Position numbers and translations under genes: made by a program. The notes beneath the pieces are model-generated. The model had not been told where the DNA came from. It worked only from the letters and a program-made list of their open reading frames with translations, and ran no database searches. Shown here piece by piece: positions 48,953 through 53,334 of a stretch of 64,000 nucleotides of DNA; within the stretch, counting starts at the first letter, position 1, and each line of letters begins with the position of its first letter. The stretch is from the sequence record PP793740.1. One strand, written 5' to 3'.

Positions 48953-49876
48953 TCAATGATCAGGGGCATATTCTAATGCAATACCACTACATTCAAGCAG
49001 GTGATCAAACATAGCTACTGGGCGAGATCCACCAAATGGAATCTTTTCACGATCAACTGCAACTGGTACAGATGAAGGTTTTTCTGCTGTTAGCCAAGAC
49101 TCGATAACCGCAGCATGCGCCAATGGGTTATTAGTTTGGTCTAAGATTTCAGCAGTCGGACCTGGACCAACTGTACAGTTATATGACCGAGTTTCAGATT
49201 CACCGAATGACCGGATAGCTGTTTCTCGACCAGGTGTGCTAGCCCTATCAGCATTGTTTAACTTAGAAGGTAGACCAAATGGTTGTGTTTTTACAGATGC
49301 TGCTGCTGACCAGTCTTCACCAATCTTTTCTAGTAGCATCATGTAAAGTGGACCCATTAAGACATTATCTTTAGTTGTTACCCACTTACCAGCTTGATCT
49401 CGATAAGATACCTTCCCATAGTGTGGTCGATACTTATCGCTATTAATTAATTTGTTGACTGCTGCCATTAGATCCACTGGATCATCAACTGGTGCGTAGA
49501 TATATGGGAATCCATCCATTAGTACTGTTTTAACATGTTCTGCTGGATTTGGGTGTTCCATCATTTTACTATGCATTGTTGGAGCAATGATCTCATAGAA
49601 ACCTAATAGTTCTTTAAATGCATAATCAACCCATTGCGTATTACCCATTACACTATTTAGTTGTTGCTGGGTTGGTTTGGCATGTCGATCTAGTCCAGCT
49701 TCAACGCGTAGGCGTTGAGCTAGATCTCGTGCAGCTGCGCCAAAACCATGTTCATAAATTCGACCATAATTTGAACGACGCATGGTTGAACCACCAAAGA
49801 TAATTAGATCTGCCCTATTACCATTTTCGTCAATAGGCATATCTTCATCTTCCATTACCTTACAGATGACGCCCTT
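48953..49876 (-). CDS. rpoB: nvRNAP beta-like subunit gp71-73, exon 2
   Basis: Begins KGVICKV..DEDMP, completing the FHGG-KGV motif; ends in SFGESE. Confidence 0.9.
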   Translation of the reverse strand, partial: KGVICKVMEDEDMPIDENGNRADLIIFGGSTMRRSNYGRIYEHGFGAAARDLAQRLRVEAGLDRHAKPTQQQLNSVMGNTQWVDYAFKELLGFYEIIAPTMHSKMMEHPNPAEHVKTVLMDGFPYIYAPVDDPVDLMAAVNKLINSDKYRPHYGKVSYRDQAGKWVTTKDNVLMGPLYMMLLEKIGEDWSAAASVKTQPFGLPSKLNNADRASTPGRETAIRSFGESETRSYNCTVGPGPTAEILDQTNNPLAHAAVIESWLTAEKPSSVPVAVDREKIPFGGSRPVAMFDHLLECSGIALEYAPDH

Positions 49877-50183
49877 CGTTATGTTCAGGTAAGTTCGCTA
49901 CGCTTACCCCGCCTCTCGTATTGCAGGCAGCTGCATGTCACCATGCAGACCAGACTATATCTTAACCTTCACCCTAGGTGGTCAGGTCCCTCCCATTTCC
50001 ACTCGCTTGAGTGTACTCCGCGTAACCGGATAGTCGTTGAACGTTCAATCCATTTCTGGAAAGCTTCGCTGCTGATTGTCTCATTGAGATGTCCCAGCAA
50101 TTAGAGAGGATTTACTTGACTCTTTCGAGATCAAGCAGGCAATTTGACAATATCCATTCCTGAGAGATGGATGGATATTAATT
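49877..50183 (-). mobile_element. Group I self-splicing intron, 307 nt, no homing endonuclease ORF
   Basis: 5' exon ends in U and the intron ends in G; core motifs P AAUUGCUGGGA, Q AAUCAGCAG, R GUUCAACGACUA, S AAGAUAUAGUCU; splicing restores the frame. Confidence 0.92.
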
Positions 50184-51362
50184 ACCACCATGAAAATCAG
50201 TCATCTTGAAAGCACCAGCAGGCATCTTTTGGGCTTTGTAAGTTACTTCGACTCGCCATTCATCTAGTGGGTCTAGTCGATAGAATCGAGATAGTTTACG
50301 GACATTATCAGGTTGAGGTAGGAACATCTGTGCAGTTACAATAAGACGTTCAAATTCCTCAGTGATATGTAGATCATCTTTACGACGTGCTAATAGACCA
50401 CGATAGATCTTTAATAGTTCTCGATAATAACTGCTAAGATGAGTATGATATTTAACTAGTTGTGCATCCATTCCTGTTGGAGTAGGGGATGGATTTACAC
50501 GCTCATCACGCCAAATATCAATATCAATAACCTTCGCACCAGGTGTGCCAATAACAGCTCTATCGAAAGTTCTATCTAGTGTACGAAGTGCCCTAGGAGT
50601 CATCTCGGCAGGAGCTAGATCATCATCATGGTCACGGATGGCGAAGATTACACCATCTGGTCGGATAACATCGCCAATGTCTGGGAATGGTTTATAGACC
50701 TTATCATCGCCATACATGTTTAAGAAGAAAGCTTTCCTACCAGCATTAGCTACAGCCGTGCTATAACTAGTTGGCATCATCCTTTTAAGGAAATTCTTAT
50801 TAGCTACGAATCCATCTTCAATGGTACCAGCGGCAGATAGGAATACAACATTAGCATTAACACCCATCCCTAAAGTACCGTCTTTCTTAACTGCACCAGA
50901 CTGTGCAATCACTGTGTCTTTAGAGAACATTTCATTTGGGGCAATGGTTTCCCACACTTCTCGATTCTTTACAAGTTCATAACCAAAGTCTTGGTGATGA
51001 CTCATGTACTCGGGAACATGTAAGACACCAATGGTTTTATATTTGTCAAAATAGTTTTCGTAGATAATAGTTGTTACCGGGTTAGATCTAATACTGTCTT
51101 TACCAATACCCGTTGGATATTTTCTAAGAACATGTAGTACACGACAATCCTCAGGAAAACGAACATCATGTGTATACTTGGCATACTCTAATTCAGCACC
51201 CGTTAGGAAATAACGCGATTCATTTCCATTTACTTCTGGTGCCTGGCCAATATGTGTTACAAACATAGCACCCCGTGCAGATGAGGTAGTGCCATACCAA
51301 GGATCTAAACCAGTATGCCCTAATAGGGTTAGATCAATTTCACGTTTACCTAGTTCAGCCAT
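50184..51362 (-). CDS. rpoB: nvRNAP beta-like subunit gp71-73, exon 1 (spliced product 700 aa)
   Basis: SSARGAMF, IEDGF and KMTDFHGG motifs; start MAELGKRE. Confidence 0.9.
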
Positions 51363-51942: not shown

Positions 51943-53334
51943 TTACAGTAGACGACCCATCATTTGGTTTCCACCTAGATTCATCATCGCGGTGTTACCA
52001 TTACCAGCTAGAGCGGGGTTTAGTGCTTGTGCAAATCCACCACCCATCGGCATTTGATTGCCCATGAGTTGCATCATTTGCGGGTGCATATTAGCCATCA
52101 TTGGCTGCTGTGGCTGCATCATCCCAGGCATTGCAAAGTTATTGTTCATCATAACAGGTTGTTGCATCATTCCGGGTTGAGCAAATTGGTTTTTCTGCCC
52201 AGCGTTTAGAAGATCTTGGATAGATGCTTTATTGCTAGTTTGAACTTGTTGTGCGGGACGTTGAGGTGCCTGAGTCATTGCTACAGCTTGACTCATAGAT
52301 GGATTAACATTCACAGTTGTGCCTACTGGTACACGTGTAGAAGTAGTTTGTTCTTTAGCAGTATTACCCACTTTAACTACACTATCCTTTTTCTGGACAG
52401 GAATTTGGGCAACTGGGTTTACAGTTTCAGAAGCTTCTTCTTCTACTTCATTGCTGACTCCTTCATTACCATCAAGAGAGGGGATCTCACGTTGCATCTT
52501 TGCAAAATCAGCAATCACCTTCTCATCAACTTTTGAATAAGGTTGAATAGCATCATCGAAGATCAGGCGATACTTATCAATAACACTATTTAGTTGAGTA
52601 GTGATTTTGTTAAATGCCTGGATAAGACATACAAAATAAGGTGCTACCCGCTCAACTGTTCCTGCTGAATATTCAGTTGGTGAATCACCAAATGGTACAA
52701 CTAGTTTAAATAGTTCGATTAGAACTGGCCGCTGTTTCTTAGGTACATTTACTCCAAGGATATCATCTTTAGAATAAAGATCCTCTACGATAGGGAACCG
52801 AATAACGCAGATACGGTTAACTGTCTTCCCATCAAATTTACCATTTGCTTTTAGATACACGCTTACAAAACGTGAACGTTTTTCAGCAGCTTTGACAACC
52901 TTATTAAACCACTCAATGGTATCTGGCTTAGCACCGGATAGTTTCTTTAGGAAGTCTGAACATTCTGGTGGAATGTCTTTATGCAGAGTGGAGTCGGCAG
53001 CTACTTCTAAAATACGTGAAGTAAGATACTTCACAGTAAACATTAGATTAGCCTTAACTTGACGCTGCATATGCTGTAGTACTTGAGAAGTACCTAGCCG
53101 AGAGATCTTTTCAGATAGCGGGTGGAAGGCGATGTAATCATCGCCTAGCCCTTTACGAAGCCAATCTTTAGTAGGTACCACTAGTCGCTTACCATCTACC
53201 TTTGCAGGTGCAGGTCGACCAAGTGGATCGAGAATACTGATCATATCCTCTTCACCTACTTTGTATCGGAAAGCAGGTAATACTTGATCACTATAGAACT
53301 TGGAAAGAGAAATCGTAGGCATTGTTATCACCAA
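51943..53334 (-). CDS. Nucleus-associated protein with Met/Gln-rich disordered tail (phiKZ gp70-like)
   Basis: Synteny after PicA; low-complexity C-terminus. Confidence 0.7.
   Translation of the reverse strand: MVITMPTISLSKFYSDQVLPAFRYKVGEEDMISILDPLGRPAPAKVDGKRLVVPTKDWLRKGLGDDYIAFHPLSEKISRLGTSQVLQHMQRQVKANLMFTVKYLTSRILEVAADSTLHKDIPPECSDFLKKLSGAKPDTIEWFNKVVKAAEKRSRFVSVYLKANGKFDGKTVNRICVIRFPIVEDLYSKDDILGVNVPKKQRPVLIELFKLVVPFGDSPTEYSAGTVERVAPYFVCLIQAFNKITTQLNSVIDKYRLIFDDAIQPYSKVDEKVIADFAKMQREIPSLDGNEGVSNEVEEEASETVNPVAQIPVQKKDSVVKVGNTAKEQTTSTRVPVGTTVNVNPSMSQAVAMTQAPQRPAQQVQTSNKASIQDLLNAGQKNQFAQPGMMQQPVMMNNNFAMPGMMQPQQPMMANMHPQMMQLMGNQMPMGGGFAQALNPALAGNGNTAMMNLGGNQMMGRLL

Follow-up and report, generated by a model that had tools for sequence, protein, structure and literature searches.

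A group I intron without an endonuclease gene at the phiKZ gp71/gp73 site in the non-virion RNA polymerase gene of a Phikzvirus genome

Introduction

The intron that separates genes 71 and 73 of phage phiKZ carries a third gene, 72, for an HNH endonuclease, and the spliced product, gp71-73, is the beta-like subunit of the non-virion RNA polymerase (nvRNAP). Here, we describe the counterpart of this intron in a 64,000-nt stretch of DNA from sequence record PP793740.1 (the window, at its full length), where a 307-nt group I intron without an open reading frame (ORF) for an endonuclease occupies the same site. The two introns share insertion site, exons, spliced product, and ribozyme, with 3 differences in 307 shared nt (blastn, MAFFT). 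The phiKZ intron differs in having an extra 911 nt, which hold gp72, in loop L1 and a P1 extension of 13 bp, compared with 9 bp in the window.

A second counterpart at the same site lies in gene 065 of phage PhiPA3. It is likewise ORF-less, with homologous core blocks and the guide ...GCCUGCUU, and differs in belonging to another genus, in a P5 extension of about 110 nt, in the lack of a P1 extension 5' strand, in a shorter P1 (GGU/UC paired with GAGCC, the slash marking the splice site), and in a decayed remnant of a homing endonuclease gene (HEG). More distantly, the T4 td intron, a group I intron with P7.1 and P7.2, is 80% identical to the window intron over the 84-nt P7-P9.2 region in its 3' part, and an annotated terminase intron of the rV5-like coliphage LL12 is 73% identical over 200 nt. 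These and other phage IA2 introns share with the window intron an in-frame stop a short way into the intron and a conserved site in an essential gene; td differs in its host gene and in the position of its ORF (I-TevI, GIY-YIG), which lies in the P6 loop and not in L1.

The DNA polymerase introns of SPO1 and SP82 (encoding I-HmuI and I-HmuII) are related through gp72, which is I-HmuI-like, and through inter-phage competition as a proposed role; they differ in ribozyme context and host gene, and the window allele has no endonuclease. The PhiPA3 gp210 intron (Birkholz et al. 2024) also interrupts an RNA polymerase beta-like gene of a nucleus-forming Pseudomonas phage and encodes a competitive HNH enzyme. 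It differs in residing in the virion RNA polymerase gene (the homolog of phiKZ gp178), at a site after a conserved DD, and in having an active endonuclease. That KTN4 and phiKZ have different HNH endonucleases has been noted in general terms (PMC4908380); an explicit description of the ORF-less allele was not found in the literature. We consider the element ordinary and essentially known, probably representing the endonuclease-loss stage of the homing cycle, and it leaves the current understanding of group I introns unchanged.

Results

An intron inside the catalytic motif of the nvRNAP beta-like subunit

The intron spans window positions 49877-50183 on the minus strand, with its first base at 50183 and its terminal G at 49877 (Table 1). 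It begins with AAUUAAUAUCC and ends in AUAACG, and it splits the beta-like subunit gp71-73 between FHGG and KGV, with U at -1 and G307 at the 3' end. Exon 1 belongs to the ORF, running from 51362, for the C-terminal half of the beta-like subunit; it closes with ...GAT TTT CAT GGT GGT, its final base at 50184 (protein end ...K386-M-T-D-F-H-G-G393, the last two codons being GGU GGU), and exon 2 opens with AAG GGC GTC at 49876 (KGVICKVMEDED...; protein start K394-G-V-I-C-K-V-M). An initial annotation, made from the letters of the window, had proposed both this 307-nt insertion between FHGG and KGV and its U and G splice boundaries; the ORF list, the Rfam match, and the junction in an intron-less relative (vB_Pae3705-KEN49, see below) confirm the insertion, and the bases found at -1 and 307 confirm the boundaries. 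The 2.5 kb around the intron are 100% identical to Pseudomonas phages KTN4 and PA7 and to about 30 other members of the species Phikzvirus phiKZ; the KTN4 coding sequence (CDS) that corresponds to exon 1, 66068-67252, is annotated as 'non-virion RNAP subunit'.

The insertion point lies immediately 5' of the codon for the conserved lysine K394. K386 and K394 of gp71-73 are the two conserved lysines of the beta double-psi beta-barrel (DPBB) domain (PMC8287921). Because exon 2 begins with the K394 codon, the intron sits inside the catalytic motif, in agreement with the initial annotation, which had it splitting the active-site motif of the subunit. Excision restores the frame: 393 and 307 residues add up to 700, the length of chain C of the phiKZ nvRNAP structure (PDB: 7OGP), in which FHGGKGV is contiguous and aligns across the junction. 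The same chain aligns with Escherichia coli RpoB around residues 1061-1129. Native nvRNAP from infected cells contains a 74-kDa gp71-73 polypeptide (PMC4666361), which provides evidence, from the protein, for in vivo splicing of the phiKZ allele.

The intron carries an in-frame stop at nt 4-6 (AAU UAA). Since translation of the unspliced message stops two codons in, nvRNAP, and hence middle and late transcription, depends on the ribozyme, a consequence that the initial annotation had also drawn and that follows logically. A separate 'gp73' start codon, ATG at 49855, is internal to exon 2 and is an annotation artifact.

Table 1. Coordinates of the exons, the intron, and its structural elements in the window (nt numbers count from the first base of the intron)
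Feature	Window coordinates	Strand	Evidence
Exon 1, nvRNAP beta-like subunit gene (phiKZ gp71 part, 393 codons)	50184..51362	-	ORF list
Group I intron without ORF, 307 nt	49877..50183	-	Rfam RF00028, minimum free energy (MFE) fold, KEN49 junction
Exon 2 (phiKZ gp73 part, 307 codons plus stop)	48953..49876	-	Pfam RNA_pol_Rpb2_6
P1 and extension	50138..50186	-	Comparison of four Phikzvirus variants and PhiPA3
gp72 insertion point (phiKZ, FBPa36)	50157..50158	-	blastn and MAFFT against phiKZ
P2 hairpin, nt 49-57/62-69, GAAA tetraloop	50115..50135	-	MFE fold
P3, nt 74-80/190-196, enclosing P4 to P7.2	49988..50110	-	Rfam alignment, MFE fold
P4, nt 85-90/109-114; short P5, nt 95-98/102-105	within 49988..50110	-	
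P6/P6a, nt 115-143, GAAA loop	within 49988..50110	-	
P7 5' strand, nt 149-153; P7.1, nt 154-167; P7.2, nt 171-184	within 49988..50110	-	
P8, nt 198-218; P7 3' strand, nt 227-231 (UAGUC)	within 49877..49986	-	Rfam alignment, MFE fold
P9, nt 236-253 (GUGA loop); P9.1, nt 254-275	within 49877..49986	-	
P9.2, nt 276-296, conserved loop CGUAGCGAA; 3' tail to terminal G307	within 49877..49986	-	

Group I fold of the 307-nt RNA

Searching the window against Rfam returned a single family, the group I intron model RF00028, which matches 49931-50159 on the minus strand with 84.2 bits (gathering score 50, E 5.9e-20) in an alignment that spans the whole model (1-253 of 253). In this alignment the P, Q, R, and S blocks (AAUUGCUGGGA, AAUCAGCAGC, GUUCAACGACUA, and AAGAUAUAGUCU) fit the consensus, bearing out the assignment to group I that the initial annotation had based on these core motifs. 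The unconstrained MFE fold recovers P2 to P6 (with P6/6a), P7.1, P7.2, P8, P9, P9.1, and P9.2, has a z-score of -2.97, and was equaled by none of 100 shuffled sequences; the core helices P3 to P9 agree between the Rfam alignment and this fold. Given the Rfam match and the comparison of the fold with shuffled sequences, we consider the observation real and far beyond chance.

Between the P7 5' strand and the P3 3' strand, an insert of 34 nt folds as two hairpins, P7.1 and P7.2, and the intron contains three GNRA loops in total. The RNA had been called minimal, which is an overstatement: the P1 extension, P2, P7.1, P7.2, P9.1, and P9.2 are all retained, and compact is the better word. All 14 variable sites among four Phikzvirus variants fall in loops or junctions or preserve pairing, including a full compensatory pair in P2, where C55-G64 is replaced by U.G in FBPa36 and by U-A in T2P. 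This pattern clearly points to structural purifying selection on the ribozyme.

No ORF inside the intron has a Pfam or PHROG match. Two short ORFs in the ribozyme core, of 53 aa at 49943-50104 on the plus strand and of 43 aa at 49969-50100 on the minus strand, are listed as hypothetical proteins in some GenBank records and are almost certainly spurious. These being the only ORFs of the window intron, it lacks the homing endonuclease of a mobile intron. Without such a gene, the allele could spread only by passive means or through an endonuclease that acts in trans.

P1, its extension, and the guide sequence

P1 is formed by exon nucleotides G-3, G-2, and U-1 together with intron nucleotides A1, A2, U3, and U4, which pair with A40-C46 (AAUUGCC) over 7 bp and place a U-1/G44 wobble at the 5' splice site. 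All 14 of these nucleotides are invariant across the four Phikzvirus variants. The exon requirement of this pairing is visible at positions -6 to -1, which read GGT GGT in every intron-containing allele, including that of PhiPA3; the intron-less alleles read GGA GGG (KEN49) and GGC GGA (HPP-Temi).

Beyond P1, nt 5-13 and 27-35 form a 9-bp hairpin, the P1 extension (AAUAUCCAU/AUGGAUAUU), closed by loop L1 (nt 14-26) and separated from P1 by the bulged GUCA at nt 36-39. The extended P1 hairpin of the initial annotation is therefore real in its 9-bp part, but the pairing it proposed between GUCA and exon UGGU is contradicted by relatives: GUCA is replaced by UUCA in phiKZ and FBPa36 and by UUAA in T2P while the exon stays the same, and UUCA loses the critical G opposite U-1, which refutes that pairing as P1.

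On this structure, splicing would proceed by the established group I pathway. The precursor messenger RNA (pre-mRNA) would fold to pair exon GGU and intron AAUU with the guide AAUUGCC as P1, external guanosine would attack after U-1, and G307 would then take the G site as the exons are ligated. The predicted product is the 700-aa beta-like subunit with its catalytic motif, K386...FHGG-K394-GV, restored.

The phiKZ version of the intron and its endonuclease gene

In phiKZ (NC_004629), gp71 and gp73 lie 1218 nt apart (intron 64455-65672; PHIKZ071-073), and alignment to the window maps the 911 nt missing here to a single point in L1, between intron nt 26 and 27. The statement in the initial annotation that phiKZ carries the HNH gene gp72 in this intron is upheld by the alignment and by domain and structure matches, and the phiKZ intron is not itself ORF-less at this site. 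The 316-aa gp72 contains Pfam domains HNH_3 and NUMOD4, and matches PHROG 59 ('HNH endonuclease', E 3e-46); its closest solved relative is I-HmuI (PDB: 1U3E, E 6e-10), a nicking homing endonuclease, with homology over residues 4-102. The ribosome-binding site and start codon of gp72 are located in L1, 20-30 nt from the 5' splice site (phiKZ intron nt 23-35, L001 4477-4489, equivalent to window 50158-50170), and its final 15 codons (WIFSNCLLDLERVK) overlap the 3' strand of the P1 extension, the internal guide sequence, and P2, with the UAA at nt 70-72.

FBPa36 also has a 911-nt HNH insert at this point of L1. Between phiKZ and FBPa36, 183 of 911 nt differ in the HNH gene (20%; L001 4487-5437 compared with L005 1596-2546), 7 of 307 nt in the ribozyme around it (about 2%), and approximately 3% of nt in the exons. 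From these unequal distances it follows that the histories of ORF and ribozyme would be partly separate; the HNH gene appears to have a history separate from, or faster than, that of its intron.

The gp72 ORF is dispensable, as 41 of 47 viable natural isolates have the intron without it (see below) and engineered deletions are viable: phiKZ orf72 deletion mutants have been isolated, and an 'essential' TnSeq signal was blamed on polar effects on the polymerase operon (bioRxiv 10.1101/2025.11.23.690004). Antisense knock-down of PHIKZ072 gave a strong phenotype, from which an early role of the nuclease was suggested (PMC12571901). Because the ribosome-binding site of gp72 is so close to the 5' splice site, interference with the nvRNAP beta pre-mRNA may be a simpler reading of this phenotype.

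Three alleles of one site in Phikzvirus

Megablast with a 661-nt probe of the junction retrieved 47 Phikzvirus records, which sample clinical and sewage isolates in a biased way. The intron is ORF-less in 41 of them, contains the HNH gene in five (phiKZ, represented twice, OMKO1, fMGyn-Pae01, and FBPa36), and is absent from one. An identical or near-identical 307-nt intron is present in 36 records, and four others (T2P, U1B, U5, and phi9_PA9) carry a 313-nt ORF-less variant. With 41 of 47 records, the ORF-less allele is the rule in Phikzvirus phiKZ and not a peculiarity; the initial annotation was thus right that the ORF is absent and the ribozyme intact, but this condition is not specific to the isolate. 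All three stages of the homing cycle coexist within the species: the intron that bears a HEG, the intron that lacks one, and the empty site. An IMG/VR scan with a 27-nt intron-specific word recovered the PA7 genome and no further alleles.

The intron-less record, vB_Pae3705-KEN49 (PP456877), contains one 705-aa ORF (...AFKMTDFHGGKGVICKVMEDED...) that reads FHGGKGVICKV through the site (L003 2663-2690). Because this allele is continuous, it fixes the splice junction independently of the RNA model. Over 150 nt of exon on either side, KEN49 differs from FBPa36, the closest relative with an intron, only at -4, -1, +3, +6, and +9, all five changes being synonymous. Such clustering fits co-conversion during homing and would equally arise under selection for a target that resists cleavage.

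The last of the 41 ORF-less records, PaZh_1 (MN871489, unverified), lacks 28 nt of the intron (nt 83-110; position about 679 of the record, equivalent to window 50074-50101), comprising P5 and the 5' strand of P4; the sequence to either side is 100% identical. This deletion is probably an assembly artifact at a hairpin, because it would inactivate the ribozyme of an essential gene.

A homologous intron in PhiPA3 and covariation of the helices

A tblastn survey with the KEN49 protein found a 450-nt insertion at the same FHGG-KGV junction in gene 065 of PhiPA3 (Miltoncavirus, NC_028999; L006 1798-2247), and an uninterrupted site in the PhiPA3 relatives HPP-Temi, PS119XW, PA1C, Psa21, Phabio, and 201phi2-1. 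The PhiPA3 insert is an ORF-less group I intron that scores 79 bits against the Rfam model, within the 79-88 bits of the phiKZ, T2P, FBPa36, and PhiPA3 copies; the exons of PhiPA3 and Phikzvirus are 68% identical at the protein level. The PhiPA3 record labels the gene only as a misc_feature, 'fragment'.

The MAFFT/RNAalifold alignment including PhiPA3 is wrong in P2 to P5, where PhiPA3 has its 110-nt P5 extension, and helices were compared by hand, disregarding P6, for which the match was wrong. This comparison yields approximately 10 compensatory pairs, in P1, P2, P3, P4, P7.2, P9, and P9.2; RNAalifold on the imperfect automatic alignment counts 11 compensated pairs. P1 itself covaries, the guide end ...GCC being kept and the intron half altered on both sides. 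In P2, G52-C66 becomes A-U; P3 has three pairs altered on both sides; P4 and P7.2 each have one exchanged pair (U-A to G-C and C-G to A-U, respectively); and P9 and P9.2 contain several compensatory swaps.

Probable footprints of a former endonuclease gene

In phiKZ, nt 5-17 of the intron (AAUAUCCAUCCAU) form a perfect complement of 13 nt at the coding end of gp72 (AUGGAUGGAUAUU), a 13-bp pairing that closes off the 911-nt insert as a loop. The window keeps 9 of these 13 partner nucleotides in its P1 extension, and the remaining CCAU (nt 14-17) is left unpaired. T2P-type introns retain six additional nucleotides, GGUGAG, that resemble the leader GAUGAG just upstream of the HNH start codon of FBPa36; with these six nucleotides retained, the T2P deletion endpoint would differ from that of the window. 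The nearest cores are those of the window and phiKZ (3 differences) and those of T2P and FBPa36 (5 differences), so each ORF-less form pairs with a different HEG-bearing form.

The PhiPA3 intron contains a remnant of a HEG C-terminus (EDFNGWIF compared with ENLDGWIF), within approximately 100 nt that can be aligned with phiKZ intron nt 922-1016 (E 3e-6). This 8-aa C-terminal remnant and the region around it are the only parts of the PhiPA3 intron that align with the phiKZ HEG region. A candidate likeness between the 5' end of the PhiPA3 intron and the gp72 N-terminus (AUGAAUG) received no support from tblastn or blastn.

Discussion

We propose that the element is the phiKZ gp71/gp73 group I intron, of a putative IA type related to td, in a form that no longer has its HNH gene, a reading to which we assign a probability of roughly 0.9. 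An endonuclease gene would once have resided in the P1-extension loop and would then have been deleted at least two independent times within Phikzvirus. That the ORF was lost, as opposed to never gained, appears the better-supported direction on sequence grounds, with appreciable room for doubt.

Several points weigh against this proposal. The assignment to subgroup IA, as a td-like IA2 intron, would have its whole basis in P7.1/P7.2 and the likeness to td, and P10 comprises 2 bp at best. The PhiPA3 HEG remnant is short, with E 0.076 in a tiny search space. Loss and gain would each need two events, so that the direction is read from the footprints alone, and the divergence of the HNH genes (183/911) relative to the ribozymes (7/307) counts against a simple loss story. 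Finally, ONT-cappable-seq of phiKZ yielded, under its conditions, no spliced reads at gp56, gp72, or gp179 (PMC10914365).

The majority status of the ORF-less form could be explained by selection, if the intron, in filling the homing site, shielded the nvRNAP gene from gp72-type endonucleases of co-infecting phages and so acted as an immunity allele, a reasonable hypothesis that the initial annotation had put as immunity without the weapon. The intron does interrupt the sequence that the intron-less allele presents, ORF-less alleles dominate the records, PhiPA3, which co-infects with phiKZ, likewise has its site occupied by an ORF-less intron, and the five clustered synonymous changes of KEN49 (-4 to +9) fit a target under endonuclease pressure as well as a co-conversion tract. 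Occupancy of the site need not protect, however, because enzymes of the I-HmuI family are said to cut intron-containing alleles too: from the work of Goodrich-Blair and Shub in 1996 and subsequent structural studies, I-HmuI reportedly nicks exon 2 a few nucleotides from its start and acts on intron-containing DNA as well. Dominance of the ORF-less form is equally predicted by neutral decay of the HEG after fixation, and the sample of records is biased. We therefore regard immunity as a possible explanation that stops short of being the favored one. Nucleus-forming phages do compete by means of intron endonucleases, as the initial annotation had stated, but the enzyme for which this was described is not gp72; it is PhiPA3 gp210, encoded in a virion RNA polymerase gene intron, which nicks phiKZ gp178 (PMC11620839).

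A broader version of this idea is somewhat more doubtful. The three-state polymorphism might be actively maintained by endonuclease warfare in shared or hybrid phage nuclei, with the ORF-less intron serving as cost-free immunity against phiKZ-type phages that bear gp72 and the empty site of KEN49 as a resistance allele; the antisense phenotype of PHIKZ072 would then reflect interference with the nvRNAP beta pre-mRNA and not a function of the nuclease.

The opposite direction of change, in which the ORF-less form is ancestral and a HEG later invaded L1 in the phiKZ and FBPa36 lineages, seems unlikely. Free-standing HEGs are known to invade introns, the insert of phiKZ and FBPa36 is cleanly placed in a loop, and 20% divergence of the HEGs beside approximately 2% of the ribozymes is compatible with separate acquisitions or with separate histories of ORF and ribozyme. 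Yet two HEGs that differ by 20% would have to have entered at one and the same nucleotide, the half of the 13-bp P1 extension left without a partner and the 6-nt leader relic of T2P resemble deletion scars, and the HEG-tail remnant in PhiPA3 also counts against an ancestral ORF-less form.

That splicing does not occur at all, with gp71 and gp73 made as separate polypeptides and the 307 nt a decayed relic, finds some encouragement in the two CDSs of most GenBank records (with the ATG at 49855), in the already split subunits of the phiKZ RNA polymerase, and in the one long-read transcriptome without spliced phiKZ reads, but is very improbable against the 74-kDa gp71-73 in the native enzyme, the fully intact ribozyme under structural purifying selection, the loss of KGVICKV including the catalytic K394 from separate polypeptides, and the single ORF of the intron-less KEN49 allele. 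We regard the conflict between the transcriptome and the protein evidence as technical, and not as a case against splicing, since the protein that was observed could not have come from an unspliced message.

Reading the element as a spliced phiKZ-type intron has practical consequences for annotation. In most GenBank entries for phages of the phiKZ species, several of which are therapy candidates, an essential subunit is split into two genes; the correct gene model is the spliced 700-aa protein. The corrected P1 and guide, together with the position of gp72 in L1, should be useful for antisense, Cas13, and transposon designs at this locus. Between them, Phikzvirus phiKZ and PhiPA3 represent each of the three homing-cycle stages by natural alleles at one site, a ready system for asking whether an endonuclease-free intron protects against a related endonuclease in the phage nucleus.

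Further observations concern the genomes around the intron. Isolates seem to differ in how many related group I introns their genomes contain: in kmuB, GUMS, PhiPizzaParty, Bobae, and others, two to four places of the genome match the intron, and in KTN4 and PA7 one does. A scan of the window for transfer RNA genes found none. Upstream of the polymerase gene, an ORF at 51943-53334 on the minus strand (463 aa as the first-start reading of the ORF list) ends in a long low-complexity tail rich in Gln, Met, Pro, and Asn (...MMQQPVMMNNNFAMPGMMQPQQPMM...).

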